Shown here: positions 1 to 55,253 of the stretch, piece by piece
How the letters are laid out: every line of letters starts with the position of its first letter
Position numbering within the stretch: position 1 is the first letter of the stretch
Assembly (NCBI GenBank): GCA_047495785.1
Contig: JBLDXI010000003.1
Span: 3,472,001-3,536,000 of the forward strand
Reading direction: 5' to 3'
From: Lepidodermella squamata
Taxonomy: Eukaryota > Animalia > Gastrotricha
DNA length: 64,000 nt
Position numbers and translations under genes: made by a program
Notes under the pieces: model-generated
Databases searched by the model: none
Seen by the model: the letters and a program-made list of their open reading frames with translations, nothing else
Told to the model about the DNA's origin: nothing

Positions 1-1
1 A

Positions 2-1468
2 CCTGCGAAAGAAGAACGTGCCGCGAGGATTCCAGTTGAGCGGACCGAAAGGAAAGAGATCGATCGTGAGGTGAGGCCCGAACGAGAAGAACGCAGTCGT
101 GTGGTGCGGCCGGAAAGAACAGAGCGGCGCAAACCTCAGGATGAGGTGAGGTACAAGTCGAAGGGCCGCAAGAAGTATAGCGACAGCGACAAGGAGGTGA
201 GCGCTGGTTATTCGGCCCGGGACACCGCTCAACGACGCAAGGCGAGAAGGAGCAGCTCAGAGCGCACCAAGGCGGCTGCGAAGAAGAAGTCGGCCAAGGA
301 GAAGCTCGACATCGGCATCAGCGCCACTATTGAAGACGCCAAGTCGAAAAAGGACGCGAAGAAGTCGTGGAAGAAGAAGGCCAGCCGGTCGCGTGGTTCA
401 TTAGCCAAACACTCCGATTCGTACAAGGCGTCTGCTGCTGCGAAATCCAGGAAGGAGGCTGCGAGGATCCGCGGCCGTGGCAAGTTCAACAAGCACGGCA
501 AGTTCAACCAGGAGAATGAGATCGACGCCGGCACTGAAAACACCCGCAATACTGATGCCATCACGTTCACCCGCAATACCGACAAGGGTCACGATAAGAC
601 CTGGACCAAGAACAAGGGCAAGGTCAACACCGAGTTCGGCGAAGGGGCTGCCCTGAGCGGTTCGATCGAGACGAAGGCGTCGAAGAAGAGCGCCAAGGCG
701 AGCAAGAAGGGCAAGAGCAAGGCCGTCAAGGCGAGCAAGTCGTCTGCCTCGGAGTACGCCAGCTACTCGTCGAACCAGCTCGACAAGAAGCGGAAGCAGA
801 AGGCCCGTCTGAGCGCTGATATCAAGTACAGCAAGGGCAAGAAGTACGCCAAGGCTAGCTACGAGAACAAGAAGAAATCGAGCGAGAGCGCCTCGGCCAA
901 GACGTCGAAGAAGGCCAACAAGGCGAAGTTCGCGAAGAAGTCCAAGTCGGTTTCGTACAAGGCCAAATCTGAAGCTTCGTACAAGAGCAAGAAGCAAGTC
1001 GCCCCGGCTAAGAAGAAGGCTATCAGGAAGTCGAAGTCCGAATCTGAGGAATCATCTGGTTCTAATTCGGCGCCGAAGAAGCCCCAGTTCAAGAGACCGG
1101 TGAAGGTGGGAAAGAAGTCCAAAAGCGAGGAATCTTCCGGTTCCCATTCCTCAGGTTCAAAGAAGCCTCAGTTCAAGAGACCGGTGAAAGTGGCGAAGAA
1201 GCAAGGCAAGAAGTCCGAAAGTGAAGAATCTTCCGGTTCAGATTCGCCTGCTCCGAAGAAGCGACAGCAGAAGAAGTTCATCAAGAAGCAAGCGAAATCG
1301 AAGTCTGAAAGCGAATCCGTCTCATCGGCGCCGAAAAGGAACAAGAAGTTTGCCAAAGAATCTGAGAGCGATTCGCAAGAAGAGTTCAGCGGCAGCTACC
1401 AAGACAAGAAGAGCAACAAGTTTGGCAAGAAGAAAAACCGCAGCAGCTTCTTCAGCGATCTTCATTAG
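2..1468 (+). CDS. Family A basic Lys/Ser-rich protein A1 (5'-truncated by window edge)
   Basis: Frame is open from base 2 to TAG 1466-1468. Shares the core RIRGRGKFNKHGKFNQE..DAITFTRNTDKG.DKTWTK.KGK.NTEFGEG.ALSGSIETKASKKS with A2/A3. Has its own SESEESSGS/KKPQFKRPVK C-terminal repeats. AATAAA at 1598-1603. Confidence 0.85.
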   Translation, partial: PAKEERAARIPVERTERKEIDREVRPEREERSRVVRPERTERRKPQDEVRYKSKGRKKYSDSDKEVSAGYSARDTAQRRKARRSSSERTKAAAKKKSAKEKLDIGISATIEDAKSKKDAKKSWKKKASRSRGSLAKHSDSYKASAAAKSRKEAARIRGRGKFNKHGKFNQENEIDAGTENTRNTDAITFTRNTDKGHDKTWTKNKGKVNTEFGEGAALSGSIETKASKKSAKASKKGKSKAVKASKSSASEYASYSSNQLDKKRKQKARLSADIKYSKGKKYAKASYENKKKSSESASAKTSKKANKAKFAKKSKSVSYKAKSEASYKSKKQVAPAKKKAIRKSKSESEESSGSNSAPKKPQFKRPVKVGKKSKSEESSGSHSSGSKKPQFKRPVKVAKKQGKKSESEESSGSDSPAPKKRQQKKFIKKQAKSKSESESVSSAPKRNKKFAKESESDSQEEFSGSYQDKKSNKFGKKKNRSSFFSDLH

Positions 1469-2731
1469 ATTAATTTGAAACTGCTCTTGTCTCATTTATT
1501 AATCGATGCTTTACGTCTTTTTAGTGTGAAACTATAAATGTCTTCTGAGATAAATTACAAATTGTCAAAACAGAATGAAATTATTATACATTTATGAAAT
1601 AAAGCTGATTATTACACTCGAACTGAGTTTTTTATTATTCCTGATTGCCGATCGAGGTTTGATGCAGCTACCAACAAAACCTTGTCGTTTTGGAAACGAC
1701 TTAACACTCACAGGGGGTCGATAATTTCAAAGTAACATGCATTTCCACATTCCTACACGAAAACCGATAGATCCATAGATAGAAATTCAGCAATTCGGCG
1801 AAGTTTTTTCTAAAATTTTATTTGTTTCTACATTTTTATCCAAGTCGTTCATTGACCACAGCTTGGTTGAAAAACAGGGTTAGGTCAGGTTGAAAGCGAG
1901 AATCTCACGCCATGAATCATCGACAATGATTGAAAGTTTTATAAAAGTGAATATTGAGAAATATTTTTGTTTCAACCATCGAGCTGCCTATTTCAAAAAT
2001 TTTCAAAATTTCCTATTGAGTAGAAATCTTAAAAATGAAACTCATTCAAAGTAATCAAAGTAATTATTCATTACTTAGGTGGCTGGGGTTCCAGACTAAT
2101 TAACGGTCAGATCACGATTGTTGGATTGCAAAAAGTTACTTATTGTCTTCGTATTGCGGAATGACCCAGTTTAAGTTGTGTCAGAAGAAACATATCACGT
2201 CAGTTAGTGACTTGGGAGGATCAAAAATCAAACACTTTTCCATCATTTTATTGCTGAAAAGTTGTACATTTCTTGCTGCCGGCAGTGTGGTATTTGTTTA
2301 TCTATGGCTGTCGGGAAACGATCTCTTATTATTTTTCTCTTTCAAGCTGAATTTTATTATTCCAAGAAAGCCGTTTGACCTTCAAAGCTGATATTGGTGT
2401 AATAAAATGCCGACATGAATTTGCAAGCTCGAACTCTTTTTCATCAACGCTAAAATCACCAGTTCATTCGAAAAATGAAAAATGAAAATACCTGAGATGA
2501 ATTTGAATTGTCAGTTTCGCCCAGATGTCGGTTCTCAGAAAGAAAACAACGCAAACAAAAGCGCGTGCCAAGTTGCTCCTCAGTCGCGTGCAAAAAACCT
2601 GGATAACACTAATAAAAACACACCCAAACAAATTGTGTTAAAAACATTCAATAGTTTTTAGATTTATTGTCTGGTAACTTCTTTCCGTATAGGACTGGTC
2701 GTTAAAGAAATTTCACTAATTCTGCAAGCCA

Positions 2732-5700
2732 ATGCGAGCCATCGCGATAATCACATTTATCGCGTCATGTTTAATCGGTAAGAATTCTACGAAAAATTGA
2801 GAATAACCTAATTATTCTAAAAAATCGAATTTCAGGCATTATAATTCTGAAATTCAATTATCTATAATTTCAGCGTTATTATTTATTTATATTCCCAAAA
2901 AGACTTACCTTTCGGATTTTTTCAAATTTCAAATTTTAAAACTTGGCACGTGTGACAAAACTATGAAAAATTATCATTTTCGAAAAATCGAGAAAAATCA
3001 TCACTTCGTCGCGTTCTTAAAGTGAGGGTCAGGTCTAGCGCAGAAAATCACGCCAAATTTATGGTAATTAATTTTGAATTTTCGGAATTTTTTTAAATTC
3101 TCTTAAATTTCAAAAGAACAAATTCGATAATTTCTTTTTTGTTCAATATTTTTTAACACAGCATTCGATTCTTGCGTTGCTGGTGATGTGGTTCACAATC
3201 CGCTCAGCCGGAAGCACGAGCCCGCCGAAGATTTCGACGCAGCCATGACGAGGCTTTTCAACCCGGATGCAGCCAGGATGAATCGGCTGAAAAAACGCGA
3301 TCTCAACGCCGCTGGAGCTGAAGTTCCATCTTCCGAATCTGGCCCGGCACCTATGTGGCAATGCCCTGCTGGGAACCCGGATACGACCACGGCAGCTGCT
3401 ACTACACCGCCGATTGTCCAAGTCACGCCACCTCAAACAGGTGGATCTACGCCGAAACCGCCAGGGCATCATTACAGCGAGTCTTGCGACTCACATGACG
3501 GCCGGCATCGTAGACCGAGATACTACAAAAGGTTGAGATATTCCTCGTCTTCGATTTCGTTGAGCAGAAGAAAACATCGGAAACACAGAATCTCGAAATC
3601 TCGACCAGTGCATCACAGGAAGCCGAAGCCCATTATCCACCACGGGCCTGTAAGTTTCTATGTTTTCAATTAAAATGGATTCAATTTTCGACAAAATTTA
3701 GAAAAAATCTGAAAGTTGCTCGGAATCGTCAGACAGGAAGAAGCCTCACAAGAGATCGCGATCGGTTCACCTGCCGAGGCGACGAATTCATCATCCTAAG
3801 CCTGAAAGCCTCAGCTCGTGTTCTGAGCCGCCCAGAATCCCACCGAAACATCACAAACCTCCTCCGCGGCCAGTTCATCGCCCGCCTAAACCTGAAAGCT
3901 TCAGTTCTTGCACGGAATCAGCGGCTAAACCGAAACCGATTCGCATCCCGAGGCGAAAAATCCACAAGCACAAAAGGCCCGTTAAGCCTGAAAGTTTGGA
4001 ATCTTGCTCGGAGCCGAAAATTCCGCGGAAACATCCCTCAAATTCTAAGCCAGCTCACCATCCGAAGCCTCACAAACCGCCTGTTAAGCGTGAAAGTTCT
4101 TGCTCTGAACCTGCTGCCAAGCCGCCGAAGCATGGTCATCATCACGGTAAAAAGTCTAGTGCCAGCTCCCGATCTGGAAAAGGGAAATATCACCACCCGG
4201 GGCCCATCCGAAAGCCGTCCCACTCAGCGTCTGGTCCCAAAAAACCGAGGCGCCCGATCCATCACCGAAGCCGGCCCAAGTCCTCGAAATCTCGAAGCCG
4301 ATCGAAAAGTCATCGCCGATATTCGGGAATTAAACGACACAGGAAATCTAGATCTGGACCTCGTCCCAGGCCGCCGGCTAAGTCTTCGAAATCACGAAAC
4401 AGTTCGAGAAAATCGTCGCATCCTCGTCGCCACCCAAGACGTTCTGGAATCAAGCGACACCGAAAATCGAAGTCTGGATCTCGCCCTAGGCCTAAACCAG
4501 CTTCGAAATCGCAATCTCACCCGAAGAAGCCGAGCAAAAGTGCCCGATCGAAACCGATTTGGCGAAGGCACTCGAAGCCGAAAAGGGGCGGTAAACCCTC
4601 GCGATCTAAGCATTCGAAGCCGCGATCTCACCCTAAGAAGCCGAGCAAAAGTGTCCGATCGAAACCGATTAGAAACTCGAAGCCGAAGAGGAGCAAACCC
4701 TCGCGTTCGAAGCCGCGATCTCTCCCGAAGAAGCCGAGTAGAAGTGTCCGATCAAAACCGACTAACCGAAGGCACTCAAGGCCGAAATCTAGTGGATCCC
4801 CGCGATCCAAACCTTCAAGGTCGCGATCTAATGGCGCTGGTATTCGTCACAAGAAAAGGCGACCTGTTGTTAGATCCAGCTCGAAACGTTCCGGTAAGAA
4901 GAGCAGCGCTGGGTGGAAGAAACATAAACCGTTTCGGGGCGTTCCAAGGCGTTCGAAGTCTTATCGCTCCAAGGCAGTGATTCGCCACCGGAAAAGTCGC
5001 TCGGCTAAGAAATCGAATTCGAAGGCTTCAAAACCTCGGAATCCTCCGAAAAAGTCGAGGTCAGCCCCAAGACCTGAAACACCCCGATCGAACCCGGCTA
5101 ATGGAGGTTGGAAGAAGCCCAGGCGTCAGAGAAGGCCCCGACCTATGAAGACGAAGCAGTCAGCCTCGAAGCAAATGGCGGGGAATACGCCATCTGAAAA
5201 TAAGCCACCTGAAACTCCGCCACCTAGCGTTAACGCAGTTGAGACTCCTCAGCCAGCGCCTCAGCCTAATACTGCGGCAAACCAGGCCCAGCCTGAGCAA
5301 CAGGTTCTGTTGAAATCGTCAAATCCCGGCCAGAATTCGTTCAGCTTTTCGGCGAGTCTTTCTGATAAGTCTGACATCGATAAGGCGAATGAGTACCTGC
5401 GGCGGAAGGGCCACCAAAAGCGAGCTTCCATGCCGTTTTCGGGCCAGTTGTCGGATATTTCGGATATTAAACTGGCGAAGCAACATTTCAAGGCGCGAGT
5501 TGGTCGTAAGCAGCGACAGATCGGTCGACGGAATAAAAGAGCGAGCGAAAGGTTGTTTTAGCTATATCCTTGAAACTTCGCAAAATTTGAAATTTCAAAA
5601 TTTGAATAAATTCAATTTTTAAATTTTTAAAATTTTTAAAATAAAGTTGAAAAAATTATCAAAATTTTGAAATTTTAATTTTAATTTGAAAAAAATTGAA

Positions 5701-6384
5701 ATTAATTCAAAAATTTGATATTGAAATTTGATATGAAAATCAAATATTGATTCTCATAATTAGTTTCTTTTAATCTTCAGGTCATTGTCCTTCATTTCGG
5801 AGAAGTTCCACAAGCTACCGTATGGCTTACAAAATCCAGGTTCCAATGCCGGCGAACGGCAGCCGTCTTCCGGTATCAGGCTGAAATCTATGAACGACGG
5901 CCCAACTCAACATGTCAATCAAAAGCATGGTAGGAAGAACCAGAAATCCAAATCGCTCTCTGTGAGTTGGCCTAACATGGGCCTGTCGAAATCTGTGTCG
6001 AACTCGATCGAATTCTCGGCCAGCTTGTCCGACCAGTCCGACATTGATCGAGCTGTTGTCTACCTGCGCAAGATCGGCTATCGAAAGGGCAAGCACGCGG
6101 GTGGTTTCTCGGCTAGTCTCGCCGATAAATCGGACCAAGATTTGGCGCGGAGGTTTTTTTCGCGCAAATTCGGTGATGGGAAGGGCGGGCTGAAGCGCCG
6201 GCGTGGCAAGAAGGCTCGAAAGGCCCGAAAGGCCCGAAAGGCCCGAAAGGCCCGAAAGCAGCCGACTGGGGCCACGAATTTCAACGTTAACAACCAGATC
6301 CAACTTCCAGCAAATGTCGATGCTCGGATAAACGCGAATTCTAAGCGTGTTCGCGGCGGAAAGAAAAAGAAGAACATTATTTGA
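2732..6384 (+). CDS. Family D secreted Lys/Arg/Ser/Pro/His-rich protein D1 (~995 aa, 4 exons)
   Basis: Exons 2732-2777, 3162-3649, 3702-5551, 5781-6384; all GT-AG and frame-consistent (2988 nt). Signal peptide MRAIAIITFIASCLIAFDSCVA. Four FSxSLSDxSDI repeats, ESCSE-type repeats and (KAR)5. Confidence 0.8.
6211..6258 (+). repeat. 9-nt coding tandem repeat encoding (KAR)5K
   Basis: AAGGC[TC]CGA x5 in the last exon of D1. Confidence 0.9.
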
Positions 6385-7200: not shown

Positions 7201-9441
7201 ATGTTTCTGTCTCGATCGGTATTAATACCGATGATAGCGGCTTGCTGCATCGGTAACTTGATTTTCCAGGAAAATTAGGTGAATTTTGACAAAACATTTT
7301 GTCTTTAGCGGCCAATTATTGTCATGCGAGTTTGATTCACGAAAAGCCAACCGCTGGCGATTCAGATCAATTCGACCTGAAATGCAAAGCCCCTCTTGCC
7401 AAGGATGACACGATAGCAGTCAGCGTTAAAGCTCTCATGGACTTCATTATGAAGTACCAACGAAGCCCAGCGCCCGAACAACAGCAACCGGAACAGCCTG
7501 TTCAAACTGAACCTCCACCAGCTGTTCGTCTACAGAATTCAAATAAAAAATCTCAAAGAAATCGTGTCGGATTCGATTCCCAAGCTGTTAACGCTCCTGA
7601 ACCTGTTCAGGACAATCAACCGGATCGTGTTTACAATAAACGGCAAGGTTACGACAGAAAGCCGAGGAATCAACGCGAATCTAAGCCTGAAGCTAGACGG
7701 AACAACCGGGGAAAAGATATGATGAAAGATTTCTCGGAAGATTGGAACCGAGAAATTGGTCAGAATCGGAGACCACCTCAAGGAAAACGTCGGCAAAAGA
7801 GCCGAAAAATGCACGATGAAGCTTGGAAGCCGGCGAAGAAATATCGATCGAAACCGGAGAAAAAACGATCGCTGTCTGCCAAGGAACCGAAGGAAGAACC
7901 GAAGCCGCAAATACCCCCAGTACCAGAGCACCAACCCAAGCCATCTCATCATGCCGTCGCGAAGCCATCGTTCAGTTTCTCGGCGAGTCTATCGGACAAA
8001 TCTGATATCGACAAGGCTAACAAGTATTTGAAGCGAAAGGGTCATGTTAAGCGAGCTTCAATGCCGTTTTCGCTGGAGCTTTCCGATCGGTCAGATCTTC
8101 ACCTGGCCAGGCAGCACTTCAAACAGCGTGCTGGTCGAAGGCCGCGCCATTTCGGCAAAATTTCGAAGCGGTCAAGTGAGAGGTATTCCTGTTTTTTTAA
8201 GAGTTGATCATTTTGAGCCAAAATACCATAAATTATTAGTTACAAATTTCAAATTTCAAATTTGCTTATTAATTCTAAAATAGGTATTTTATTTTATTCT
8301 GTAATATTGCTATAATCTATTTTTTTATTTTTTATTTCATATAGGTAATTAACTTCGGAACTTCGGAATTTTTATCACTAATACTTGCTAATTGCTTAAT
8401 TTTTTATTAGTTTTTTGTATTTTTGTTAATAATTCTACCACTAGAAATAAGATTCTAGCCCTAAATTCCTCCGATTTTTTTGCGATTTCGATTCTTACCC
8501 TCATTCGATGGGACTTCTTTCCAACCTGGTGTTCCAAGTTGAGCAGAATAGCTATAAAACCCGACTTCCTAGGCAGTTAGTTTAAAAATCTCTGATTTGC
8601 CAATCGAAAATGCTTAAAATTTCGATAGTGAAAAATTAAATGACATGTTTCAATAAATTATTGTTCCTAATTAATCAAATCAATTAACACTATTTTATTT
8701 ATTTATTAATAATAAAAATATTGGCTTCAAATTTCTCATAAACGGGATTCTGGACATACTTTTTCTCACTTTTTTCTTTTCTCTAGGTCTTTATCCTTCA
8801 TCGCGCCCAAGTACCGAAAACGTGCGCAAAAATCAGCCCAAGAAGAAATCGGAATTCCAGAGAAGCCTGTGCCGAAAATCGCCGACCTATCGACCAACAA
8901 TAAGGGGGACGCTCATCTCCGACTTAAATCAGCCGTAAAACCAGCTGAAGATCAATCTCGAGTCGAAAATTCAAATTCCACTCCGGCAAAAGATCGCAGG
9001 CAAAAGAAAACACGGAAAATAAATTCATCTGAATCTCGATCTGGAAGACCGTTCGGCAAGAACCACCGGCTTCGAGGGTCTCTTTCAGATTCCAAAGGCT
9101 TTTCCGCAAGTTTGTCCGATCAATCCGACATTGCACGGGCTCGTATTTACCTGCGCAAAATTGGCTATCGCAAGGGCAAATTTCCGGGTGGCTTTTCGGC
9201 GAGTCTCGCCGATAAATCCGACCAAGATCTGGCTCGCAAATTTTTCTCGCGCAGGCTCGGCGACGAAAAGGGAGGCGCAAGACGCCGGAATCGTAAGCAA
9301 CAGCCGCCGAAGAATCGGCAGATCAGAAAGCGCAAATTGCCGCCGTCTAAATCTGTTGAATCGGCGAGTATTAAGGCTCGCGGCTCGAAGAAACCGGTTG
9401 GCAAACGAAGCCATGACGAGTCGAACTGTTCGTCAACTTGA
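7201..9441 (+). CDS. Family D secreted basic protein D2 (~526 aa, 3 exons)
   Basis: Exons 7201-7252, 7309-8182, 8787-9441 (1581 nt). Hydrophobic N-terminus MFLSRSVLIPMIAACCIAANYCHA. Four FSASLSD repeats nearly identical to D1. The last intron is at the same phase-2 position (SER|SLSFI) as in D1. Confidence 0.8.
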
Positions 9442-10233
9442 CTGGAAAATGCGGTTCAATTCTCACGGTGATATCACAAATGCGGAATGTGGTTCAAATA
9501 TTTATTTATTTATTTATTTTTCGGGTAAAATCCAACCAGCTTAATCTGTTTTGGCTGACTCTCTTTTGAAAAATTCAGAATATCTCTTGAAAAACATGAT
9601 CATGGACTATATGTGAAAGCTACTGATTCAGCTAGACGAAATGAATAAATTGAGCATCATTTAACTTGGGTTCAAGTTGTTTTTTGTTTTCTTCTTTAAA
9701 AATTTACATATCAGCGAGCTTCAATATTCTACTGGAATGAACCTTTCGAACCGCTGAGCTGATGAACTTAACTGTTGTGCCTGGCGCAAGTGTCACTTTC
9801 AGGGATTAGGAAAATATCTGAAACCTGAAACATATCATATGTATGAGGAGAGTTTCATGATGACTGTTTCAAAGTCGAGGGCTGCTGACTGCTGATAAAG
9901 TTGCATGTGTTTGCGTTGTTTCATCATTTTGAAAATGTTCATTATTTCCCTGTTTCTCTTAGCGTCACTGTTCGGCAATCTCAAGAATGTTCCTGTATCA
10001 AGTGAATGACATGAAAATCTTTCCTCCTCTGGAATCGAGACGTCGAATGATGTTTATCAAATAGCAGAAGTGAACATAATTTTCAGACCTCAAGGCAAAG
10101 CCAGGTTAGCGTTGTATCCATTTGATTCAAGTGTCACGAATGCGCCTGGTTGAAATTAAAGTAGAACGAAAAAATGTTCAATCGATTAAGCGGGATTTTT
10201 TAGGCACGCGTTTAACAAATCGCGCGTAGCCTT

Positions 10234-10332
10234 CACGTGAAATAATCATGAAAGGTTGCGCAACATCGACTGGAATCAACCTCGCTCAGGTATATAAACC
10301 CGAATCAGCTGCCTGTTTCAATCATCAATCAG
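10234..10332 (+). promoter_or_regulatory. Putative core promoter of B1
   Basis: CACGTG 10234-10239, TTGCGCAACA 10256-10265, TATATAAA 10291-10298, ATCATCAATCAG 10321-10332. The same order is seen upstream of A3 and C. Confidence 0.6.
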
Positions 10333-10387
10333 CGTTTTATATTTTAATTAGTACTAGTACACATTCTTTATTTGAATTCATACGAAA

Positions 10388-14952: not shown

Positions 14953-15373
14953 GGCTGATTTACTGGAGATTATCACAATTGGATAACAATACAACACTAA
15001 AACAATTAACAAATAATAGATAATGAATGCCGATTTTTCCTTTCGAGTGCATAAAGAATTGTTGAAAAGACGTAGAACTTCACGCTGCCGGATAATCAAA
15101 TCAAAAGAATGTTTTGATACACTTTTTCAAATTGAAATGAGTGAACATGAAAAAATCGTGAAAAAACGCGCTTGATATAGCGCGTGGCTCTTCCATTGTT
15201 TACAAGAAAACACGATTGGGCGCGCGATTGGACACGTGCTTTGGAAATTTTGCCACGCAACAGGTATTGTGAAAAACATACCGATTGGTCTTTAAATACC
15301 GGCTAAGAATTCAGGAAATTATCAGTCTCCTTCTCTCTTTATTTTAAATAATTTTAAATATTTTCCGAATACC

Positions 15374-42918: not shown

Positions 42919-45900
42919 ATGAGCAACCCATCTTCTTCACACGCCGGATCTTTTACCGGTAAAAGTCTGAGAATTCGCAAAAATAATGACCGGCAAGATC
43001 TGAACTCTTGTGCCAAGTTGATTTTGGACGATTTGGGAGCTTTCGACCAAGCTTTGTGGCTTCATGGACCTTTTCCAAGCGATAAAGATGGCGTGAGAAA
43101 GCAACTCGATCATATCGCAACTTTTATGGAAACCTCGAAGCATCTCGCCGCTGTTATCGCGAAGCTTCAGGAAGAGGAATTCGAGGTTCAATCTGTGGCG
43201 AGAAGTTTGCCGAGTAGATCCAGCTCATTCAAAGACCAGCCAGTCGTGTTTTTGTCAAATAAACTCGAAGCGCTAATCGCGACAGTTCAAACCCGGAAAC
43301 AAAATTTGACGAATTTACTCGCTCGAATGGAGTCGGAAGTCGCGAATAATTCAAAAAAATCAGCCAACGAGCTTTTGCTGGAACAAATAGCTGAAATCGA
43401 GCGGCAAATCTCAGCGATAGATGTGTCGTCGAGAGATCTTAGTCAGGATAAATTCGACAGAATCTGCCAACAACTTCAGGCTCAAATTTCGAATTTATTA
43501 AAAATTTCAGGAATTTCCCAAGTTGGAAAACAGGTAATTTTTTTAATTTAATTTCCCAATTTTTAATAAACAATTTTTTAGACCTTGTTAGAGCTTGAAA
43601 AACGGCTTAACACTGTGTTGGCGAAGCCGAGATTAAGCTCTGAATTTTCAACAAATTTCCCGCCTATTCAGGAGGATGATTTCGAGCGTCAGATCGTTGA
43701 ATTGCTGGAAAAACTTGCCTCGGTCGACTCGAAATTGTTCGTACCCCTTCACATTAAGCCAAGTCTAGCCGAGGCGAAAGTACAGCTCGATAACCTGAAC
43801 ACATTTATCACTAGTGAAGTTCAGCCGATTTTGGTCGAAGCTCAAAATATTGTTGAAATAAACGGCCGAAATGACGATTTTCTGGTGGCAGATCTCGCGA
43901 GTCGAGTCGAAAATGTCGAGAAGGAAATCGCCCGGCAAAAGGGTGATTTCGAAAAATCGCTGAATTTAATGGAACAATTCGACAAAATTTACTCGGATTT
44001 TGACGATTGGCTAGTTAAGGTCGAGCAATTAACCTCGATCAAAAGAACTGAATTCTCAGGTAATTTAAAGGCTCAAATCGATGAAATGTCCCGTTTGGAT
44101 GAATTGGCTGGGGAAATCAAAGGAAAAGCGGCCGATATGCGGCAACTTCTCGAAATCGGCACAATGATTGAGTTCAATTTATCGCGACCTGATGCCGTAG
44201 CTTTTCGTAAGAAAATGTCAGAAATTCACCTGAGGTGGAAGGCTGTTAAAGACTCGGCCAGTTTACAATTGAGCAAAGTCTCCGAAACAAATCGATTGGT
44301 CACCCAATTTTTTAATGACTCAAAAGATCTCCACGACTGGATTAATGCGACTCAATTGAAGCTAGCGGCCTCGCAACAACACGAAGCTCCGAATGCTTGG
44401 GAAAGTCGGGGTGTTGTTCAAATTCTACTCCATCGCCTTAACCATCTCGCCGGGCAGATTCGGGCGAAAGAACGGACGTATAACGAGCTAATAGTCCGGG
44501 CAGTCACCCTAAAAGAGCAGCAATGCAAAAATGACCTGGATAAAATTGAATTTCAGTCGAAAATCGATGAGTTGAAGCACGCTTGGCTAGGCCTGATATC
44601 AGCAGTCGACGACCGCAGGCGGCGTCTTGAGAGTGTTTTAATCACCCTGGGCGAGTTTACCGAAACGCCTGATTCATTGGCGAAATGGTTATCTCGGACT
44701 AAATTACTGCTCGATATTGAATTGCCAACTCACGGCGACTCGGCAACTGTGGATAAGCTAATAAGGGACCATCAATCGCTAGAAGAGTTAGTCACGAGGA
44801 GGGCAGAGGCGATTGATCGATTTCGGACAACTAGTCTATCGGCTCATTCTACGACATCTGTATTCTCGGTCACCGATTTCGGCTCGAGTAATTCAATTAG
44901 CGAAAGTGGGGTCATGTGCGAGTTGGAAGACCTGCGGAAACAGGTCAAAGGTTCAGCAGAACGGCGGGCTGAAATTCTGACCCATTCCAAGCAAATGGCG
45001 GAGAAATTTGATGGCCTAATCAAAAAGTTGAATGATTGGTACGACGATTTGAGGTCGAAATGCTCGGCTGTTAGTTCTAGTCTCACGGCGAATAGTAGTC
45101 AATTAACGCGGGCTCAATTGACGGATTGCAGTCAAAAGGTCAATCAATGTGTTCAAGATGCTGAGGTTCAGCGGGCGAATTATAACGAGGCCTTGATATT
45201 AGGCCGGCAAATTTTGGACCACTGCCACCCTGATGCGGTTTTGTCGATAAAACGCAATTTGATGCTTCTCCAATCTCGCTGGGGTGAGATTGTTGTCAAT
45301 AGTTTACAGGGCCTCAAGGTCTATATCGATGAATCGCTGGCGAGGTTTGATAATGATTTGTCTAAACTTGCTGATGTTTCGACTTGGGTCGATGAAGTTT
45401 TGCCGAAATTACTCGTTCAGCCGCTGGATGAAGTTATGCTGAGGAATTGTGATAAGGCAACGCTAGAGCGGTTGTTGAATGAGCAGGTTCGGCTCGAGGA
45501 GAGTATTGCTATGCAAATGGCGGCTTATACCCGGTTACCGGCGCAATTTCAGCGGCGGATTGAGTCGGATTGGAAGAAGTTGTGCCAAATTATTGAAACC
45601 AGGCACAGAACACTGCATGCGGCGACGGAATCCAGGCGTCAGGTTGGTTAATTAACTGAATAAACCGAATGCTTTTTTTCGAGCATTATTCTAAAATAAG
45701 ATGTTTCGATTTTTCGAAATTTCTAGTCCACGAGATAACGGGTAGAGAAGCATGTGCCAGCCACCAGGAAATTTTACCATTTACCTTTCACCCTAATTTC
45801 CGAAAATATCTACTATCTCCGCTCTCAACGCTCCCAATATTGAAAAATCACTGAAATTGTCCCATATGTAAAGCAAAAAGCAAACTAAGAAAAATGAGAG

Positions 45901-47406
45901 GCGAAGTCAAATCTCAAGGCCAGACAAATATTCGAAATTTTTTCAAAAAGTCATAAGAATAGCCGTCAATTATGCCAGTTGAGAATAGAATAAAAAAATC
46001 TAGAGAAATCTGGAGAAACCTGGTCCAGCCGGGTAAAAACCGAAAATTACCGAACCAGTCACCACCGGGATTTTCCAAGTTTTCTCCGGTTGTTTTCTGA
46101 TTTTAATTTCTTCGGTAAAATCGTGAATAAAGGCTAGAAGATTCTACGGGTAGGCTTAATTTTAGAAAATTACTTCAATTTCCTACAAAAAAGTTCGCAA
46201 AATTACAAAATGGTTGCGCCACTAATGGGACACGTTGTACTGGGTGCCCAAAAAGTACGCATCCATTTTACGATTTTCCCATTATTTTTTTTTATTTCTC
46301 CATATTTATTACTGCGAAGGGTATTTTCCATCCATTTTTTGCGATGTTACCGAAGAAACTTATAATTTACCATTAGTAATTGGTTCGGTAATTTTCGGTA
46401 TTTTGCCTCTCTCTATTTGAACCTATTGCTTCCTTATTTTTGGTGACCGATGACAGATTCCATTTTTAATAGCAATTTTTATGCGGGTTTTGAAGTAATC
46501 AGGAAAAGCTCAGGAAAAGAATTTCCCGCTTGGCCAAGATCGCCAAGATGGGAAACGGATGGGTCTAACCCTGTCCTCTACTTCAGCCTTCAACCTTGCC
46601 TTGAGAAATTTAAAACGTCATGGGAGATTGGTCCTTGGAAGGATGAACGTGGCGATAATATCATGTTGTTTTATTATTTAAATTTCCACTTTTATAATAA
46701 ATTTATCATTAAAGTTGATCGAATTCATATTTTTGAACCATATTTCATTTTTTAGGCTGATAAACTACATAACTTCAGCTTTGACGCTTGGCGAAATCGT
46801 TATAACGCTTGGCTGGCCGAAAAGCGGTTCCGCCTTCTCGACGCTTTCCGAGCGCTGGATACAGACCGTGACGGGCGGTTGACGAAGCGCGAATTCATCG
46901 ACGGCGTGTTACGGTCTCGATTTCCTACCAACGGCTCGGAAATGCAGCTGGTTGCTAAACACTTTTTCGAAGGCGGAATCGCGAAAATCGGCTTCGGGGA
47001 TTATCAACGGCTACTGCAGACAACCGTTGTCAACCAGAGCCATGCTGATATCATTCTATACGAAGCTAGTCAATACCTAATGGAGTGCCGGTGTAAGGTC
47101 AGATTTCGTATCGAGCGAATGCCGGATGGTCGGTACAAGGTAAAGTTGGTCAAGATGGCAGAAATTTCCCAAATTGAATGATTTTTTCTTAGATTGGTCA
47201 ACAAATCGCGGTTGTTAAAATTATATCCTCGACGTTAATGGTTCGAGTTGGTGGCGGCTGGGAACCGATGGATGAATTTGTTCGGCGAAATGACCCTTGC
47301 CACGGTAAAAAATAGAAAAATTTCCAATTTTTTTAGCTTTATCTCTTTTTTCTGTTTAGTCGCTGCAGCTCGTCAGCAGCAAAGTTCAGGCAGGAGAGTT
47401 TTTTAA
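42919..47406 (+). CDS. Short spectraplakin-like protein (spectrin repeats, EF-hand, GAR domain; MACF1/dystonin/Shot family), ~1072 aa, 5 exons
   Basis: Exons 42919-43533, 43582-45642, 46756-47139, 47193-47304, 47360-47406. Spectrin-repeat Trp/Leu pattern. EF-hand region [11 protein letters not shown]...[31 protein letters not shown] domain [10 protein letters not shown]...YKIG...[21 protein letters not shown]. Confidence 0.85.
45853..46237. mobile_element. MITE family 1, copy 2 (degenerate left end) in intron 2 of the spectraplakin-like gene
   Basis: Right end GGGACACGTTG|TA (46227-46239). TGTCCCATA at 45858. Internal CCGGGTAAAA..GAAAATTACCGAACCAGTCACCA is shared with 20.4 kb. Confidence 0.7.
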
Positions 47407-47572: not shown

Positions 47573-49216
47573 TCACCGCGGCACAGATTGGTTGACATAC
47601 CGCAGCACGCCCTTAATTGGCTTGCCTTTTTTCAGCGATGACGCCTTGCTCTTGCTCTTCCGCTTGACCACACTCCGTCCCCAGTTATCTAATCTGATAT
47701 CATCAGCGATCTGGTAACGAGTATGCCCGCCTCGGTGGTAAAGTACCTTGTACAGCGGCAGCCCGGACGCCGCGACTTCGGTCGCTAAATCAGAACGCCG
47801 GCGGCGGTAGTAACGCGGTCCAATCGGCCGTGGGTAAGTGTAAATCGATTCGTCGTAGTTCAAATCGCTCGGATACCGCTTTTTCACGCGACGTTTCTTC
47901 ACAACGTCGCGAACTGTCGAGCAAGTTTCGCATGTTGTCGTTTCAGATCGGGCGGAAAAATTGTGAACATGAGGTTTTTCTTTGGGCTCTCGAACTCGCG
48001 GCGTCGTTTTGACTGACGGCGGCACTACCGCGGTAATTTTCACTAGATCAGCTTGAGTTGAAGAATCGTTAACTGGAACTAAATCTCGATAGGTTTGCGT
48101 GTCTCGGCTTTTCGTCGGCGGCTTCTCCGGCTGTTTGAAAACAACGCGCGGCGTCGAATTTTTCACCTCATCGGTTTGAACTTCGACCGAGTGACTTTTC
48201 GGCTCGATAACCACCTGGATTGTAGAAACTGGGTTAGGTTTCTTCGGAGTAACTTGATCGCTATTTGAAATTGTTTCGTCTGAATCTCGCCGGCCTCTTA
48301 CCTTATTTCGACCTAGAATCGAGAGCTTGTCCACCATTATTGATTCATTATAGTGAAAATTATCAGGCTCAGGTTCCGGGCTTTTTGTGTCACCCTCGTC
48401 GACCTCAGGCGGGCCGTCGTCTGGCACAACTTTAACGGCGAAGCAACACCGGTCGATGACTTCGTGCTTTTCATCGGCTGACCGGCCTCGCCACGCCATT
48501 TTCGAGCAGCATGAGCAGATGCAGCCGATGATACGCTCGAGTGAACAACACAATCTACCGCCACATCTCGTCGGTTTATCGTCGATGAAACGGCGCCGTT
48601 TCGCCTGGCATAGTAAAACAGCCAATATGATGATGATGATCAGCTCGATGAAGGCGAAAATCGACACTACAATGCCCCAGATAACGGCCCAGCCGAGCCC
48701 ATTGTCGTCATCCTCATCATCACTCGATTTTTCCTCAGTTTCTCGCTTTGAGCGAATTTTTAAGGAGGATTTTTCACATTGTGGCAATTCACTCCACGTG
48801 CCGTCTAATTTGCATTTGGTGACAGAAAAAGTACCGACGGCTAGCTGGTAGCCAGGAACACATTCATAGACGACGAAATCGCCTGCTATTGCCGCGGGTT
48901 GAGTGTAGAAAGAAGATTCGCGAAGTCTCGCATGTTTGATTTCCGGAGCGAGACCGCAAGTTGGCGCCTCATTAGCCGGTGCACATTTCGGCAGCGATGA
49001 CCAGCCGCTTTTAAGGCAAACAGCCGTATCGTGCCATGTTGGAACTAACTGGTAACCGCTTTTGCACGAATATTTTAAAACTGAAGTAGAGTTCGTTTGA
49101 TATGACGAGTCTGAATTTGAAATTACTGGAACAGATCCGCAGCTATCATCGGAGGCATTCGATGTTGATAGTAATAAAATTGCTAACAAGCCTCCATAAA
49201 ATAATAACCCAGTCAT
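47573..49216 (-). CDS. Type I membrane protein with two CCP/sushi domains (547 aa)
   Basis: Signal peptide, two C..P...C..GY.L...C...W...P.C modules, KIRSKR furin-like site, long hydrophobic segment LGWAVIWGIVV...IIIIILAVLLC, then a Cys-rich juxtamembrane region and basic tail. Confidence 0.85.
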   Translation of the reverse strand: MTGLLFYGGLLAILLLSTSNASDDSCGSVPVISNSDSSYQTNSTSVLKYSCKSGYQLVPTWHDTAVCLKSGWSSLPKCAPANEAPTCGLAPEIKHARLRESSFYTQPAAIAGDFVVYECVPGYQLAVGTFSVTKCKLDGTWSELPQCEKSSLKIRSKRETEEKSSDDEDDDNGLGWAVIWGIVVSIFAFIELIIIIILAVLLCQAKRRRFIDDKPTRCGGRLCCSLERIIGCICSCCSKMAWRGRSADEKHEVIDRCCFAVKVVPDDGPPEVDEGDTKSPEPEPDNFHYNESIMVDKLSILGRNKVRGRRDSDETISNSDQVTPKKPNPVSTIQVVIEPKSHSVEVQTDEVKNSTPRVVFKQPEKPPTKSRDTQTYRDLVPVNDSSTQADLVKITAVVPPSVKTTPRVREPKEKPHVHNFSARSETTTCETCSTVRDVVKKRRVKKRYPSDLNYDESIYTYPRPIGPRYYRRRRSDLATEVAASGLPLYKVLYHRGGHTRYQIADDIRLDNWGRSVVKRKSKSKASSLKKGKPIKGVLRYVNQSVPR

Positions 49217-49715: not shown

Positions 49716-51938
49716 TTATACTTGATCATCATCAGTACCCCGCCATACATCCAGCCATTTGACTTCGGATTTGTCATCAGAATTAGCCGGTCGACCATCT
49801 TGGTAGTAATAACCAACGTTAGGCCCAGCCGATTTTGCCCTTCTCCTTGCAATCCTTTCATCCTCTTCGTTATGCTTCATAACAATCGCCGAATCATCGA
49901 TAACCCAACGTTTCCGCCCTATCATGTCAGCGCTAGTTTTGATATTCGCGATACTAATCCTGTTGTCAGGCGTGAAGGCCCGAGAAGGTCTCCCGCTGCC
50001 TAGAATCGGCCGACAAGCATCATGGCCATGTATAATCTGGTTGTAGTAAGCATTCGGGCGATGATATAGGACCGAGACGATAGGCGTTTTTCGCAAGTAA
50101 TACATTTTTTGAGTATTAATGGGAGCCAGTTTTTTCTTCGGCTTGATAATAATGACCTGAGCATCGGTTGGAACCATCTCCGCCTCGGCTTTTGGCAGCG
50201 GCGGTGGTGAAGGTGAAGGTGATGGGACAGGAGGTGGTTGAGGAATATGTCGGCTCGGGGTATGGCGGTCGACAGTTTCCTCAACTACTACCTCCTCGAC
50301 AACTGTTTTCCGCTGGCTCCACTCCTCCCAACATTCAGTCACGATTTTTTGCTTATATATTGCCAGCCACTCTTCGTCGACGATTTGAACGGGCTCGGTA
50401 AGGACAGAAACTTGTCTCACCTGGGGCCCTTCTGTGTTAGATCCGGTTGAAAGTAGAGTTTTATTGGGATCGACAGGAACCGGTACTGTTACCTCGACTA
50501 CAACAGGCTCAATAGGGTCGGTGTTAATGCCGAATACCCGGGTTCGAACTGGGTCTGTATCAACTCCGAAAGTTCGGGTTTCGACCTTCCGGGGTGACGG
50601 AGGTTTCGTGGCTGGTTCTACTGGCTTCGGTTGCGAAGGGGGTGATAGTGGCGGTGTCTTAGGCCTCGGGGGTGGTGATTTTTCTCTTGACGGTGGTGTT
50701 TTAGGTCTCGGTGGTGGTGGGGGCGATTGTGAGGGTGCTAGCGGTCTTTCCGGGTCGACTTTACCGCGGCATTTCGGGTGGCAGGCCATAACAAGAACGG
50801 ATGTTAAAATTGAGAGCAGCATGGTTGAGGTGATTGTCATAGTGCTGGCCCAGATTAACCAACCACTGCAGTCTTGGTCGTCTTGCGTCAACAGAGATTT
50901 TGCGGCTCCAGCTATTGCTCCCATTGGTGACTGGATAAAGTTTGGAATGGCAACTTTTACCACAACTGTGTCGTTGTCCGGAGCTGCGAGGCATAATAAG
51001 ATTAAAATGTATTTTAATGACATTTTCAAAAAAATTCCGGCAAATTTTTTAAATTTTAAATTCATTAATTTAATTTTCTTCGATGTGAAAACACATTTTA
51101 AGAGCATCAAAGTTAAACGCTGCTTGATTGAGTTCCAGCCCAAATGCCTAAAAATGTGTTTGAAATGATTCAAGTGTCATAATTAAAAAATATTTACTGC
51201 AAATTATGTAAAAAGTTTTGCCTCACCTAAAATGCATCGTGGAGGCGCCGTCCATAAGCCATCCTGGCCGCAGTACGTGTAGTCAATGTCCTTTCCTTGA
51301 TCATGGGTCATAGAAAATGGGGCGACACATTTGTACTTGACAAAATCGCCGAAGCGTGCTCGTGTGTTGTTGAGAAAATTCTGAAATACGACGTAGCCGT
51401 TGTCTACCACTGGATACCTGATCGGGCATTGAGCTGATCATAATTAATAAATTGATTTATTATCACCAAAATTCGGTTCTGTCTTCGCACCTTTCTGCAG
51501 ATCAACAGGAAGACTTTGACGCTGGGGAATCGCCGGATTCGGGTTATCAGCTTGGTTACCATCTGGCTGGCAAACTGGTAGCGGAGTCCAAGTGCCGTCA
51601 TTACGGCATATCAAATAGTCGACAGAATTGTCAAATTTGTAACCAGCGAAGCAATAATAATTGACCTGCACAAATAGCAGCGATTTATCTCAAACGTTTA
51701 TTAAATAGGTCAGTGACCTACTCTTGTGCCTGGCAATAAACGAATACTGCTCAGTGCGGCCTCGTTATAACCGCCGTTTGCTATCCGACCTGGCCTACCG
51801 CATTGAACTAATTGAGAAATAAATAAATTCGATTTTGAATCGATAATTTAAATCAAAATTTTTACCACTATTTTGTGCCAGTGCATTTTCTGCGATTGCC
51901 AGAGCGCTTATAATAAGTATCCAAATTTCAGGCGGCAT
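49716..51938 (-). CDS. Type I membrane protein with two CCP/sushi domains and a Pro-rich cytoplasmic tail (~602 aa, 5 exons)
   Basis: Exons 51938-51866, 51807-51722, 51665-51491, 51433-51227, 50983-49716 (1809 nt). Signal peptide MPPEIWILIISALAIAENALA. TM segment WLIWASTMTITSTMLLSILTSVLVMAC. Confidence 0.8.
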
Positions 51939-52502: not shown

Positions 52503-53781
52503 TTAGTAAGAATGGTGGTTGCTGGCGGCCTTCTTGCCTTCCTTCTTGCCCTTCTTGCCACCCTTCTTACCGCCCTTCTTGCCACCCTTCTTGCCACCCT
52601 TCTTCGAAGCCTTCTTGCCATGGTAGTCGCTGTTGCTTTCCTTCTTGGAGCTGGCGCTCTTTTCTTTAACGCTGTAAGAGCCTGAGGACTTCTTGCCCTT
52701 CTTGCCGCCCTTCTTGGCAACCTTCTTAGGGGCGCTGGCGCTCTTCTCTTCTTGGGCGCTGGCGGAGAGTGAGGCCTTGAAGTTGTGGGAGGCGTGTTCA
52801 GCCGAGGCGGAGGCGTGCTTCTTGGACTTCTTGGCCGAGGCCTTGCGGGCGTGGGCAGAGTCGGATTCGGAGGTCTTCTTCTGGCTGGCCTTGTAGTCAC
52901 GAGCATTCTGCGAGTCACGGGCGACGGAGACCGAGGCGCGGCGCTTGTGGGCCTTGTTGCGCTTCGCCTTCTTCGAGGCAGCGGCAGCCGAGGCCTTCGA
53001 GTCGCGGGAAGCGTAGGCAGCAGAGTGGGCCTGGCGAGCCTTCTTGCCGCTGGCCTTCTTGCTCTTCTTCTTGTGGGACTTGGCCTTGGCAGCGGCGGCG
53101 GAGTCAGCCTTGGCGAACGATTGCGAGCCGGATTCGTAGCTGAACTTGTTGACCTTGTTGTGGCCCTTGTCGGCGAAGGTCTTCTTCTTGAACTCGATGG
53201 CCTCGCCCTTCTAGTCACGGGCCTGATCCTTGGTGTAGCCGCTCTTGCGCTTGTGGTCAGCACGGCCGTGCTTCTTGCTACGCTTGTGCTTCTGGGCAGC
53301 GGCGGCAGCACCAGAGTTCTTGTAGGAGTTGTCGTGCTTCTGGACGGCGGCCGAGCCACTTTCACGGATCTTGCGACCACGGCGGTGCTTGGCGGCCTTC
53401 GAGGCCTTCTTGTCGTAGGCAGAATCTTGCTTGCCAGCAGACTCGTAGTTGGCAGAGGCGCGTTCAGCGCTGGCCGATCGCTCCTTGATCAGTTTCTTCT
53501 TGTCGCTGGTCTTCTTGTTGTGGGAAGCATCGGCCGAGGCGTAGTCGGCGTAGTTGAATTCGGCTTCAGCAGAGGCGGACTTGCGGTCGTAGGTGTCGCG
53601 CTGGGAAACTGAGGCGGAGAATGAAGCTTCCTTCTTTTCACCACCCTTCTTACCGCCCTTCTTACCACCAGCATAGGCTATATAAGAAAATAATTGAGGA
53701 AAACAATTGGTCGAATTGGGTTCGCAACTTACCAGCAGAAACGAGGAGACCGACGAGTGCGAGTGCGAGAATGACACGCAT
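52503..53781 (-). pseudogene. Divergent family B gene B4 with one in-frame TAG (null allele, recent pseudogene or base error)
   Basis: Exons 53781-53733 and 53677-52503. Signal peptide MRVILALALVGLLVSAAYA. TAG at 53213-53211 where paralogs have AAG (QARD-K). The frame then stays intact to ...KKGGKKGKKEGKKAASNHHSY TAA (407 codons if read through, 171 aa if truncated). Confidence 0.7.
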
Positions 53782-53894
53782 TTTAAAAATGATAAAACTA
53801 AAAACAATTATAAAGAATTTTAAGTAAATATTGCATTTCTTTTATCGAGATTCCATGTCTCAAAATATAACGATTTTCAGGTTTTCTTCGTTCT

Positions 53895-55078
53895 TTAATA
53901 GTGACGGCGACCGTGCTTGAATCCACCGCGCTTGCCGTTGGAGCCAGCCGAGGCGGAGGCGGAGTTCTTGTTGACTGAGGCCGAGGCGAAGTTGCCACGG
54001 CGACCCTTGTGACCGAAGAAGCGACCACCACGGCGGCCATTGCCAGCCGAGGCAGAAGCAGATCGCTTGTTAACCGAGGCAGAGGCGAAGTTACCACGAC
54101 GGCGGCGACCGAAGAATCCGCGCTTGCCGTTGGAGCCAGCAGAGGCGGAGGCGGAGTTCTTGTTGACGGAGGCAGAGGCAAAGTTTCCACCACGGCGACC
54201 ACCATGACGGCGTCCGAAGTGGCCACGACGGCCACGGAAGTTGCCGGCAGAAGCAGAAGCAGAGCGCTTGTTAACCGAAGCCGAGGCGAAGTTGCCGCGA
54301 CGACCACCATGACGGCGGCCGAATCCGTGACCACGACGACCGCGGAAGCTGCCAGCGGAAGCAGAGGCGGAGCGCTTGTTGACCGAGGCAGAGGCGAAGT
54401 TTCCTCCACGGCGGCGACCGTGGCCGAAGTAGCGACCAGCGTGATGGCGACGGCCGAAGCCCTTGTGGCCCCTGCGGCCCTTGTTGGAGCCAGCCGAGGC
54501 GGAGGCGGAGTTCTTGTTGACTGAAGCCGAGGCGAAGTTGCCACCACGACGACCCTTGTGGCCAAAGAAACGGCCATGACGGCGACCACCGTTGCCAGCC
54601 GAGGCAGAAGCAGAGTTCTTGTTAACGGAGGCTGAGGCGAAGTTACCGCGACGGCCCTTGTGGCCGAAGAAGCGACCGCCACGGCGGCCACCATTGCCAG
54701 CTGAAGCAGAGGCGGAATTCTTGTTAACTGAGGCAGAAGCGAAGTTGCCGCGACGGCGACGACCGAAGAATCCGCGCTTGCCACGCTTGTCGCCAGCCGA
54801 GGCGGAAGCCGATTTCTTGTTGACAGAGGCTGAGGCACCGTTTCCACCACGACGACCACCGCGCTTGCCGTGGAAGTTGTGGATCAGACCAGTCTTCTTG
54901 ACGTTGTCGACGCCAGCCGAGGCGGACGCCGATTTCTTGTCAACGGAAGCCGAGGCATCAGCAGAGATGGCGGCTGGAAATCGTGTGAAAAGATAAAATC
55001 GCTGGCGATTACTGAAAAATGTTAGGACTTACCAACGCAATACAGGGCGAGGACTGCTGCTACGAGAGCGATACGCAT
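53895..55078 (-). CDS. Secreted silk-like repeat protein C (~374 aa, 2 exons)
   Basis: Exons 55078-55033 and 54973-53895. Signal peptide MRIALVAAVLALYCVAAISA, then 10 copies of [NF]ASASV[ND]K[NKR]SASASAG separated by Gly/Arg/His/Phe spacers. Ends HGRRHY. Absent from the ORF track because the exon 2 frame has no start codon. Confidence 0.9.
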
Positions 55079-55122
55079 TTTAGTGTAATGAAAAAATATA
55101 TTTAATAAATTATTGAATGAAG

Positions 55123-55253
55123 CCGATTGATGATTTCTCACCGGTTTCCTGCCAGCTTTTAAAGCCGTAGTTGTTTTTGTGCCAAACGTGTTGCGCAATT
55201 CAATAACGATTGAACCAGTCACGAGCTCGGTCTACTTGGGCGCCGCGCACGTG
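55123..55253 (-). promoter_or_regulatory. Putative core promoter of gene C
   Basis: On the minus strand: CACGTG 55253-55248, TTGCGCAACA 55198-55189, TTTAAAA 55163-55157, ATCATCAATCGG 55134-55123. Confidence 0.55.

Follow-up and report, generated by a model that had tools for sequence, protein, structure and literature searches.

A cluster of twelve genes for secreted, mostly cationic, low-complexity proteins that may build an extracellular material

Gene content of the locus

The DNA analysed here is a 64,000-nucleotide stretch of contig JBLDXI010000003.1 (positions 3,472,001 to 3,536,000 of the forward strand), called the window below and numbered from its first letter. It is gene-dense animal DNA with very short introns. 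About 55 kb of this compact invertebrate DNA hold a cluster of 12 gene models that belong to five mutually unrelated families: A (three genes, namely the partial A1, A2 and A3), B (four genes, B1 to B4), the group D1/D2/F, and the single genes E and C (Table 1). The models were rebuilt from lists of open reading frames (ORFs) and a search for short 5' exons, and they bear out an earlier note on this DNA, which had placed 12 genes in five groups here. The products are of two classes. Those of Class I (A, B and E) are rich in Ala, Ser, Lys and Gly, in part also in Arg, and contain no Cys; B and E are also devoid of Pro. Their tails are of the Lys-Gly or Arg-Gly type and end in His or Tyr. The members of Class II (D1, D2, F and C) are long scaffolds of Pro, Lys, Arg and Ser whose codon usage is ordinary. 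The cluster is interrupted between B3 and B4/E, where three unrelated genes (part of a spectraplakin-type gene, a Sushi membrane protein gene and a Pro-rich membrane protein gene) lie at 42.9-51.2 kb.

It is conspicuous that the genes begin in the same way. The first exon, 43-55 nucleotides (nt) long, codes for most of a signal peptide and ends at a phase-1 GT donor, and exon 2 completes the hydrophobic core and the cleavage site, with small residues at -3/-1. The first exon measures 43 nt in A2 and A3, 46 nt in B1, D1, E and F, 49 nt in B2, B3 and B4, 52 nt in D2 and 55 nt in C; all of these lengths are 1 mod 3, i.e. the first intron is in phase 1 in 11 of the 11 genes with a visible 5' end, just as the earlier note had it. 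When the whole window was scanned for an ATG followed by a hydrophobic peptide, a GT donor and an open downstream frame, the 11 first exons were returned, and the remaining matches sit only within other reading frames. Judged by rule of thumb on the spliced models (n=11), the N-termini have a basic n-region (with an MR start in nine), a hydrophobic core and small residues at -3/-1; examples of predicted cleavage sites are ISA/D, ALA/G, VLA/G, AYA/G and VAG/Q (the slash marks the cut). The first introns are 55-63 nt long in A, B and E and 56-384 nt in D1, D2, C and F. Most introns of the locus measure 47-90 nt, and their acceptors are mostly of the TTTCAG, TTTTAG or TTATAG type. Nuclear basic proteins of the protamine or H1 kind were considered and set aside, since every complete gene has a signal peptide.

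Table 1. Positions of the genes, promoter cassettes and neighbouring genes in the window (aa, amino acids; pI, isoelectric point)
Feature	Position	Strand	Exons	Remarks
A1	2-1468	+		truncated at the window start, so that only the 3' part (488 aa) is visible
D1	2732-6384	+	2732-2777, 3162-3649, 3702-5551, 5781-6384	995 aa, pI 12.0
D2	7201-9441	+	7201-7252, 7309-8182, 8787-9441	526 aa, pI 10.6; four SLSD units
B1 cassette	10234-10332	+		CACGT box, TTGCGCAACA at 10256-10265, TATA, initiator ATCAATC
B1	10388-11477	+	10388-10433, 10495-11477	342 aa
A2	13152-14952	-	14952-14910, 14848-13152	579 aa
B2 cassette	15233-15325	+
B2	15374-16465	+	15374-15422, 15483-16465	343 aa
C	17426-21684	-	21684-21630, 21577-21411, 21259-20960, 20047-17426	1047 aa
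F	23702-35742	-	20 exons	2568 aa, pI 11.3, net charge +594
Two N-terminal SLSD blocks of F	30800-32551	-		in exon 3 of F
A3 cassette	upstream of A3	+		TTGCGCAACA at 36918-36927
A3	37041-38810	+	37041-37083, 37147-38810	568 aa
B3	40858-41973	-	41973-41925, 41864-40858	351 aa
B3 cassette		-		B2 type (CCACGTAAC)
Spectraplakin-type gene	42919-47181	+	large exons	spectrin repeats, nesprin-like repeats, weak GAS2 fragment; between B3 and B4
Membrane protein	47573-49216	-	single exon	two Sushi domains
Membrane protein	49716-51173	-	single exon	Pro-rich, no known domain
B4	52503-53781	-	53781-53733, 53677-52503	longer than B1-B3
E	53895-55078	-	55078-55033, 54973-53895	374 aa, pI 12.0
E cassette	55131-55253	-		CACGT, TTGCGCAACA at 55198-55189, TTTAAAA, initiator ATCAATC
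Membrane protein	56183-56488	-	single exon	Sushi fragment
GTPBP1-type GTPase	57593-59050	+	single exon	485 aa
Membrane protein	59242-62350	-	single exon	C-type lectin domain, mucin-like stalk, long Pro/Ser-rich tail

Class I proteins

The A proteins open with a Gln-rich part followed by an ESKESPESKES run with at least eight S-x-E sites, and continue with KKHG repeats, a conserved core of about 250 aa and a (Lys-Gly)n tail that ends in HGY or YGSYY. A1 is 69% identical to the A2 core over 302 aa (E 3e-76). The B proteins are composed of 19% Ala, 18% Lys, 13% Ser, 7-9% Gly and about 3-4.6% Tyr, with zero Pro or Cys; Gly/Lys/Tyr motifs are found at the two ends only and the C-terminus reads KHYY. 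A comparison of A with B by BLASTP gave no homology. E is built from ten NFASASVNK-x-SASASAG modules that alternate with Gly/Arg/His/Phe spacers, and it ends in RRHY.

B4 carries an in-frame TAG at 53213-53211 (minus strand) at a position where B1-B3 have AAG (Lys). Past this triplet 235 further codons are open and conserved, with a GC content at third codon positions (GC3) of 0.79, and the TAG could mean that B4 has recently become a pseudogene or is a nonsense allele, that the codon is read through, or that the sequence contains an error. As regards gene order, the convergent pair B1/A2 (10388-14952) mirrors the convergent pair A3/B3 (37041-41973). The A and B genes seem to have been duplicated jointly, as a two-gene block in inverted orientation, B2 being an addition beside A2.

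Class II proteins

D1 is rich in Lys, Arg, Pro, Ser and His and contains six Cys motifs of the form ES-x-SSC-x-E as well as four copies of a repeat that we call the SLSD unit. In exon 3 (3702-4100) the E-S-x-S-S-C-x-E motif recurs in a Pro/His/Lys-rich stretch that holds almost the sole Cys of the mature proteins of the cluster, and these cysteines could form disulfide links. Neither of the ORFs 5781-6381 and 8787-9438 has its own start, and both continue exactly in frame from a donor placed behind a conserved '...SE(R)'; they are therefore best read as the last (3') exons of D1 and D2, to which a conserved phase-2 donor would join them. The last intron of D1 is AT-rich at 5603-5657.

F has 17 phase-2 introns in succession. 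Its exons 6-13 each code for one Pro/Lys/Ser repeat of about 75 aa (PKPVSRS...KKPAKKHRVKKP) with a mean identity of 58%. The Cys content of F is 0.2% and the repeat exons have none. Intron 2 (32671-35112) is unusually long at 2.4 kb and has unrelated ORFs inside, e.g. 33937-34275 on the plus strand, which suggests that it is the site of an inserted element; a Pfam search of this intron gave no match.

The SLSD unit is 33 aa long (F-S-x-S-L-S-D-x-S-D-I-x-R-A-x-x-x-F-x-x-x-G), is common to F, D1 and D2, and occurs in 25 copies in the window, among which S5, D13 and A17 are invariant. In F the units are arranged in three collinear blocks of about 200 aa with six units each, near the N- and C-termini, and the blocks are 46-56% identical to each other. 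Such a higher-order repeat argues against mere compositional drift. The AlphaFold model of an SLSD block shows one 13-residue helix per 33-aa unit and no packing (predicted local distance difference test score, pLDDT, 53; predicted template modelling score, pTM, 0.18), and the hydrophobic residues I14, A17 and F21 share one face of the predicted helix. In other words, F, D1 and D2 are predicted to carry short amphipathic helices strung on basic linkers. A TPR-like solenoid was rejected for this repeat, as the helices in the model are unpaired and do not pack and the Pfam E_motif match lies under the cut-off.

C differs in charge between its two parts. The N-terminal 580 aa are acidic (pI 4.8) and include a Thr-rich, mucin-like stretch; the C-terminal 447 aa are basic (pI 10.3), rich in Ser, Tyr and Arg, and end in FGHH. 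The middle junctions of C are the least certain among all the models.

Coding evidence and composition

Third codon positions take most of the differences between paralogues. The ratio of nonsynonymous to synonymous substitution rates (dN/dS) from paralogue comparison is 0.25 for A2/A3, 0.09-0.23 among B1-B3, 0.35-0.46 for B4 against B1 and B2, and 0.61 when the A1 fragment is compared with A2. This comparison of sequences shows that the assigned frames are coding and under purifying selection. A sequencing run flagged as probable RNA contains 48% of the 31-mers sampled from 10200-16500 (B1, A2 and B2), which is about the exonic share. Long antisense ORFs (e.g. 15479-16456 on the minus strand) were regarded as by-products of the GC3-rich coding strand.

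The mature proteins are for the most part disordered, and K+R+H make up 24-34% and S+A+G 25-50% of their residues. The pI is 10.1-12.0, with C as the exception, and the net charge runs from +50 (B) to +594 (F). The earlier statement that all the proteins are of low complexity and dominated by these residues thus stands for the low complexity and the strongly cationic character overall, and has to be narrowed for C, in which the basic part is confined to the C-terminal 447 aa.

The order of the residues is also biased. S-x-S is above composition-matched shuffles in 12/12 proteins (z 3.4-15.7), and S-x-E is enriched in A2 and A3 (15 and 12 vs about 5 expected), in B1-3 (5 vs 1) and in F (35 vs 21). 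These patterns fit alternating-serine strands and phosphorylation in the secretory pathway, without proving either. Furin-type sites are enriched in E only (5 R-x-[KR]-R vs 1.9 expected), and the dibasic sites of E reach z 5.4.

Codon bias and a common promoter cassette

The codon usage of A, B and E is extreme. Their GC3 is 0.63-0.87, and Lys is encoded by AAG in 92-93% of cases, Phe by TTC in 92-100% and Asn by AAC in 91-96%. Five neighbouring genes have a GC3 of 0.45-0.52 and use AAG for 38% of Lys. F, D1, D2 and C are intermediate (GC3 0.47-0.57).

Five genes (B1, B2, B3, A3 and E) have one promoter layout in common. Counted from the ATG, it consists of a CACGT box near -145, a site of the basic leucine zipper (bZIP) type near -122, a TATA-like box near -90 and an ATCA[A/G]TC initiator near -58. 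The bZIP-type site reads TTGCGCAAC in B1, A3 and E and CCACG[C/T]AAC in B2 and B3, and the CACGT box lies about 20-25 nt upstream of it in B1, B2 and A3. The exact 10-mer TTGCGCAACA occurs three times in 64 kb, each time 111-132 nt 5' of the ATG of one of the non-homologous genes B1, A3 and E. The palindrome-like TTGCGCAA(CA) at 10254-10265, 36918-36927 and 55189-55198 matches the consensus of C/EBP and PAR-type bZIP factors, and together with CACGT it is a candidate gland or epidermal enhancer common to unrelated genes.

Extreme codon bias together with a common cassette in five genes suggests that A, B and E are probably co-expressed at a very high level. B4, D1, D2, F and C are without the cassette, and co-regulation is therefore supported for A, B and E only. 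The earlier note had assigned all 12 products to one material; this is not supported for D1, D2, F and C, which have neither the cassette nor a strong codon bias.

Searches for relatives

No family, nor any of the non-repetitive N-terminal parts, has a match in Pfam, so the earlier view that the proteins contain no known domain is upheld. The large protein databases were queried with the SLSD part of F and the A core, not with B or E, and low complexity weakens all homology searches of this kind. Within this scope, a word-index search of 5.8 billion proteins returned no match for the F SLSD ORF or the A core, and when 1.84 billion representatives were searched exhaustively with a profile of 25 SLSD units, there were two matches (P0001 and P0002), which are unrelated TPR-like or other repeat proteins. 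PDB sequences gave no match, and neither did two metagenome contig scans. The top scores of atlas searches were 0.66-0.72, a weak resemblance to arthropod low-complexity clusters. Homology to a characterised family with another role, which the earlier note had named as grounds for giving up its proposal, was thus found in none of the Pfam, PDB, word-index, profile and metagenome searches. Missing relatives and domains are usual for lineage-restricted material proteins.

Comparison with known systems

Among described systems, the cement of sabellariid tubeworms (Pc-1 to Pc-5, Sa-1 to Sa-5) resembles the locus in being a set of secreted, basic, low-complexity proteins that contain Gly, Lys, His and Tyr. 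Tubeworm cement proteins are made together in gland cells, their serines are phosphorylated by secretory-pathway kinases, and the cement sets by charge complexation and quinone cross-links (PMC12621633). In composition, the GY-rich and H-repeat classes of the cement are echoed by the ends of the B proteins (GGYGKGKGGKKGGK ... GGYGKKGGKKGGKHYY) and by the KKHG repeats in A. The differences are nevertheless substantial. Pc-3 consists of 72.9 mol% Ser, and an acidic poly-Ser partner was not found in this window, in which the longest Ser run is 4 and no stretch of 80 aa exceeds 29% Ser. Long decapeptide arrays are absent, and Tyr makes up only about 3-4.6% of the B proteins. The F SLSD block and A core queries returned no cement proteins, and B gave only weak arthropod matches in the atlas. 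The intron-poor neighbouring genes and the acceptors suggestive of trans-splicing (see the last section) are unlike annelid genomes, and an annelid source such as Dimorphilus or Capitella was considered and held to be unlikely for this reason.

The families IDPA, IDPB, IDPC, APPG, NSPB and FIPR of the nematode pharyngeal cuticle are likewise secreted, lineage-restricted and of low complexity. They are co-expressed very highly to form an extracellular matrix, and phase separation is predicted for them (10.1101/2022.03.11.483951). Unlike these, the proteins of the locus are far more cationic and one of them has 2568 aa, and the searches that were run gave no relatives among them.

Silk-like structural proteins, as defined by SilkSlider, are secreted, repetitive and biased in composition, have evolved independently in restricted lineages and build animal materials (PMC4944945). 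Secretion is predicted for 11 genes of the locus, and the SilkSlider minimum, 25% Gly over 80 aa, is reached by E only (0.25), the best windows of all other proteins lying at 0.09-0.19. A lenient Gly rule (28 aa/35%) takes in A2, A3, B3 and B4 through their Lys-Gly tails, and F, D1, D2 and C fall short of both levels.

The H-fibroin of caddisflies and the Balbiani-ring proteins of chironomids resemble the locus in that (Ser-x)n stands beside Arg/Lys/Gly blocks and in that a giant secreted basic protein has one repeat per exon. The termini of the fibroin are absent from the proteins of the locus, and the likeness in alternating Ser is compositional; the Cys-containing constant region of the Balbiani-ring proteins has no counterpart in the repeat exons of F or in A, B and E, which are without Cys. 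The Sgs and chorion clusters of Drosophila are tandem arrays of small secreted structural genes with a signal peptide split by a short intron and with common cis-regulatory modules, and some of their members are Thr-rich and mucin-like. They are comparable to the present locus in its cassette and in gene C, and are unrelated to it in families, composition and organism.

In summary, the compositional logic is like that of tubeworm cement, caddisfly and chironomid silks and silk-like proteins, and the defining tests place the locus in no named family. The analogues named in the earlier note therefore do not hold as identifications: there is no poly-Ser, Tyr is low in B, Cys is missing from A, B and E, and the Gly threshold is reached by E alone.

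What the proteins may build

We consider it probable, at roughly 60%, that the genes of the locus specify structural components of an extracellular material which secretory cells produce in bulk. That proteins of such a kind build animal materials has precedents (PMC4944945, PMC12621633, 10.1101/2022.03.11.483951). In our proposal the Class I proteins would be co-expressed in one cell type and would form the bulk phase. The polycations could be condensed with polyanions, be it phosphoserines at S-x-E and S-x-S sites, sulfated glycans, or the half of C that is acidic and glycosylated. Once the proteins are released, physical cross-links would come from (S-x)n, Ala/Ser stretches and helices, and the terminal Tyr, His and Lys residues would supply covalent or metal cross-links. 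We infer the condensation, the phosphorylation and the Tyr/His/Lys cross-linking by analogy with tubeworm cement and phase-separating cuticle proteins. The material itself may be an attachment glue, a cuticle or surface coat, or an egg cover.

Several observations weigh against this explanation. The gene content of the window includes no cross-linking enzyme or kinase gene, and an analogy based on composition can mislead. The cassette of A2 is decayed relative to that of A3, B4 is interrupted by its in-frame TAG, and the Class II genes, being without cassette or codon bias, perhaps serve another tissue or role. The SLSD model is of low confidence (pLDDT 53), and that of the A core is unreliable (pLDDT 52). 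We also note that the splice junctions were placed by sequence logic in all models.

A narrower form of the proposal would see in the locus the set of genes with which a small aquatic invertebrate makes its glue for attachment under water, with Class I (A, B and E) as the bulk adhesive under one bZIP-type cassette and the giant polycation F together with D1 and D2 as surface-binding or cohesive scaffolds. We regard so specific a function as unlikely. If the trans-splicing and the nematode-like signals are read correctly, then in aquatic nematodes this would mean the glue of the tail (caudal) gland, which a 2026 preprint termed 'presently ill-defined'.

Another possible explanation, to which we give less credence than to the general proposal and more than to a glue, is that these are ordinary disordered proteins of the cuticle or apical matrix of a moulting animal. 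They would be lineage-specific counterparts of the secreted low-complexity families that are abundant in nematode cuticles at each moult, and would be produced in waves by epidermis or pharynx, with tyrosine as the cross-linking residue. The explanation is a special case of the extracellular-material idea, in which the material is of a known kind rather than a new glue or silk, and if the source is a nematode-like ecdysozoan, disordered proteins of the cuticle matrix explain the locus about equally well. The His/Tyr ends would suit tyrosine cross-linking as it takes place in nematode cuticle, and the TTTCAG-type acceptors, the introns of 47-64 nt and the strong unpaired acceptors 4-40 nt 5' of the ATG in D1, D2, F, A2, B4, C and the Sushi gene point in the same direction. 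Such signals hint at a trans-splicing, nematode-like source animal outside the well-sampled clades, for which the odds are about even. In C. elegans, 48% of the pharyngeal secretions at the moult are disordered proteins, which belong to nematode-only families (10.1101/2022.03.11.483951). The searches with the F SLSD and A core queries, however, found no similarity to nematode proteins, Pfam detected no domain of the collagen, cuticlin or chitin-binding kind here, and the neighbouring GTPBP1 gene has no match above about 62% identity. Nor is such extreme positive charge known from the described C. elegans families.

Functions outside a structural material are less likely, because the proteins are large, lack processing sites (except for E) and show no diversifying selection. 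Secreted polycations that are duplicated in tandem could serve in host defence as antimicrobials or be precursors that are cut at basic sites into signalling peptides, and E, with its R-x-[KR]-R and dibasic enrichment, could give about 10 peptides that end in Phe-Gly ahead of Arg runs. Yet the E spacers vary in length and sequence, unlike those of multi-copy peptide precursors, A, B, D and F show no excess of furin-type sites, and at 340-2568 aa the proteins are far above typical antimicrobial or signalling precursors. Since, in addition, dN/dS values of 0.09-0.46 indicate no diversifying selection and an extreme codon bias suits bulk structural products, we find this role improbable. Equally doubtful is a role in reproductive or packaging secretions, i.e. 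in polyanion condensation in granules, a mating plug, a spermatophore or an egg cover. The central repeats of F are similar in composition to the Lys/Pro/Ala tails of linker histones, which would suit polyanion binding, and the acidic, mucin-like half of C is a possible partner; on the other hand, no sequence feature favours reproduction over other secretion.

Should the proteins form an adhesive or a coat, they would offer five new sequence designs for polycationic materials that set in the wet: Lys-Gly tails capped with His or Tyr, Ala/Ser blocks set between spacers of Arg, Gly, Phe and His, a helix-on-a-string module of 33 aa, a protein of 2568 aa in which each repeat has its own exon, and a mixed acidic-mucin/basic protein. 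The compact promoter cassette could then mark the producing cell type, and the locus would supply direct probes (for in situ hybridisation, knock-down and proteomics) in a lineage in which the molecules of the glue or coat are unknown. If the product is a routine cuticle matrix, the value is more modest and lies in a larger catalogue of fast-evolving disordered matrix families, the locus still being a clear example of one cassette that co-regulates unrelated genes.

Neighbouring genes and other features

The neighbouring genes are listed in Table 1. The best matches of the GTPBP1-type GTPase are vertebrate proteins with about 61-62% identity, and nothing closer was found among 5.8 billion proteins, so the source lineage seems poorly sampled or unannotated in databases. 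Rfam and tRNA scans from position 5700 onward gave no match.

The ATGs at 2732, 7201, 14952, 21684, 35742, 53781 and 49216 are each preceded, at a distance of 4-40 nt, by a strong polypyrimidine-AG acceptor that has no partner donor; in the Sushi gene, TTTTTAG stands four bases 5' of the ATG. B2, B3 and E, which have the TATA box and the initiator, are without such an unpaired acceptor. Unpaired acceptors in this place are a signature of spliced-leader trans-splicing or of introns in the 5' untranslated region.

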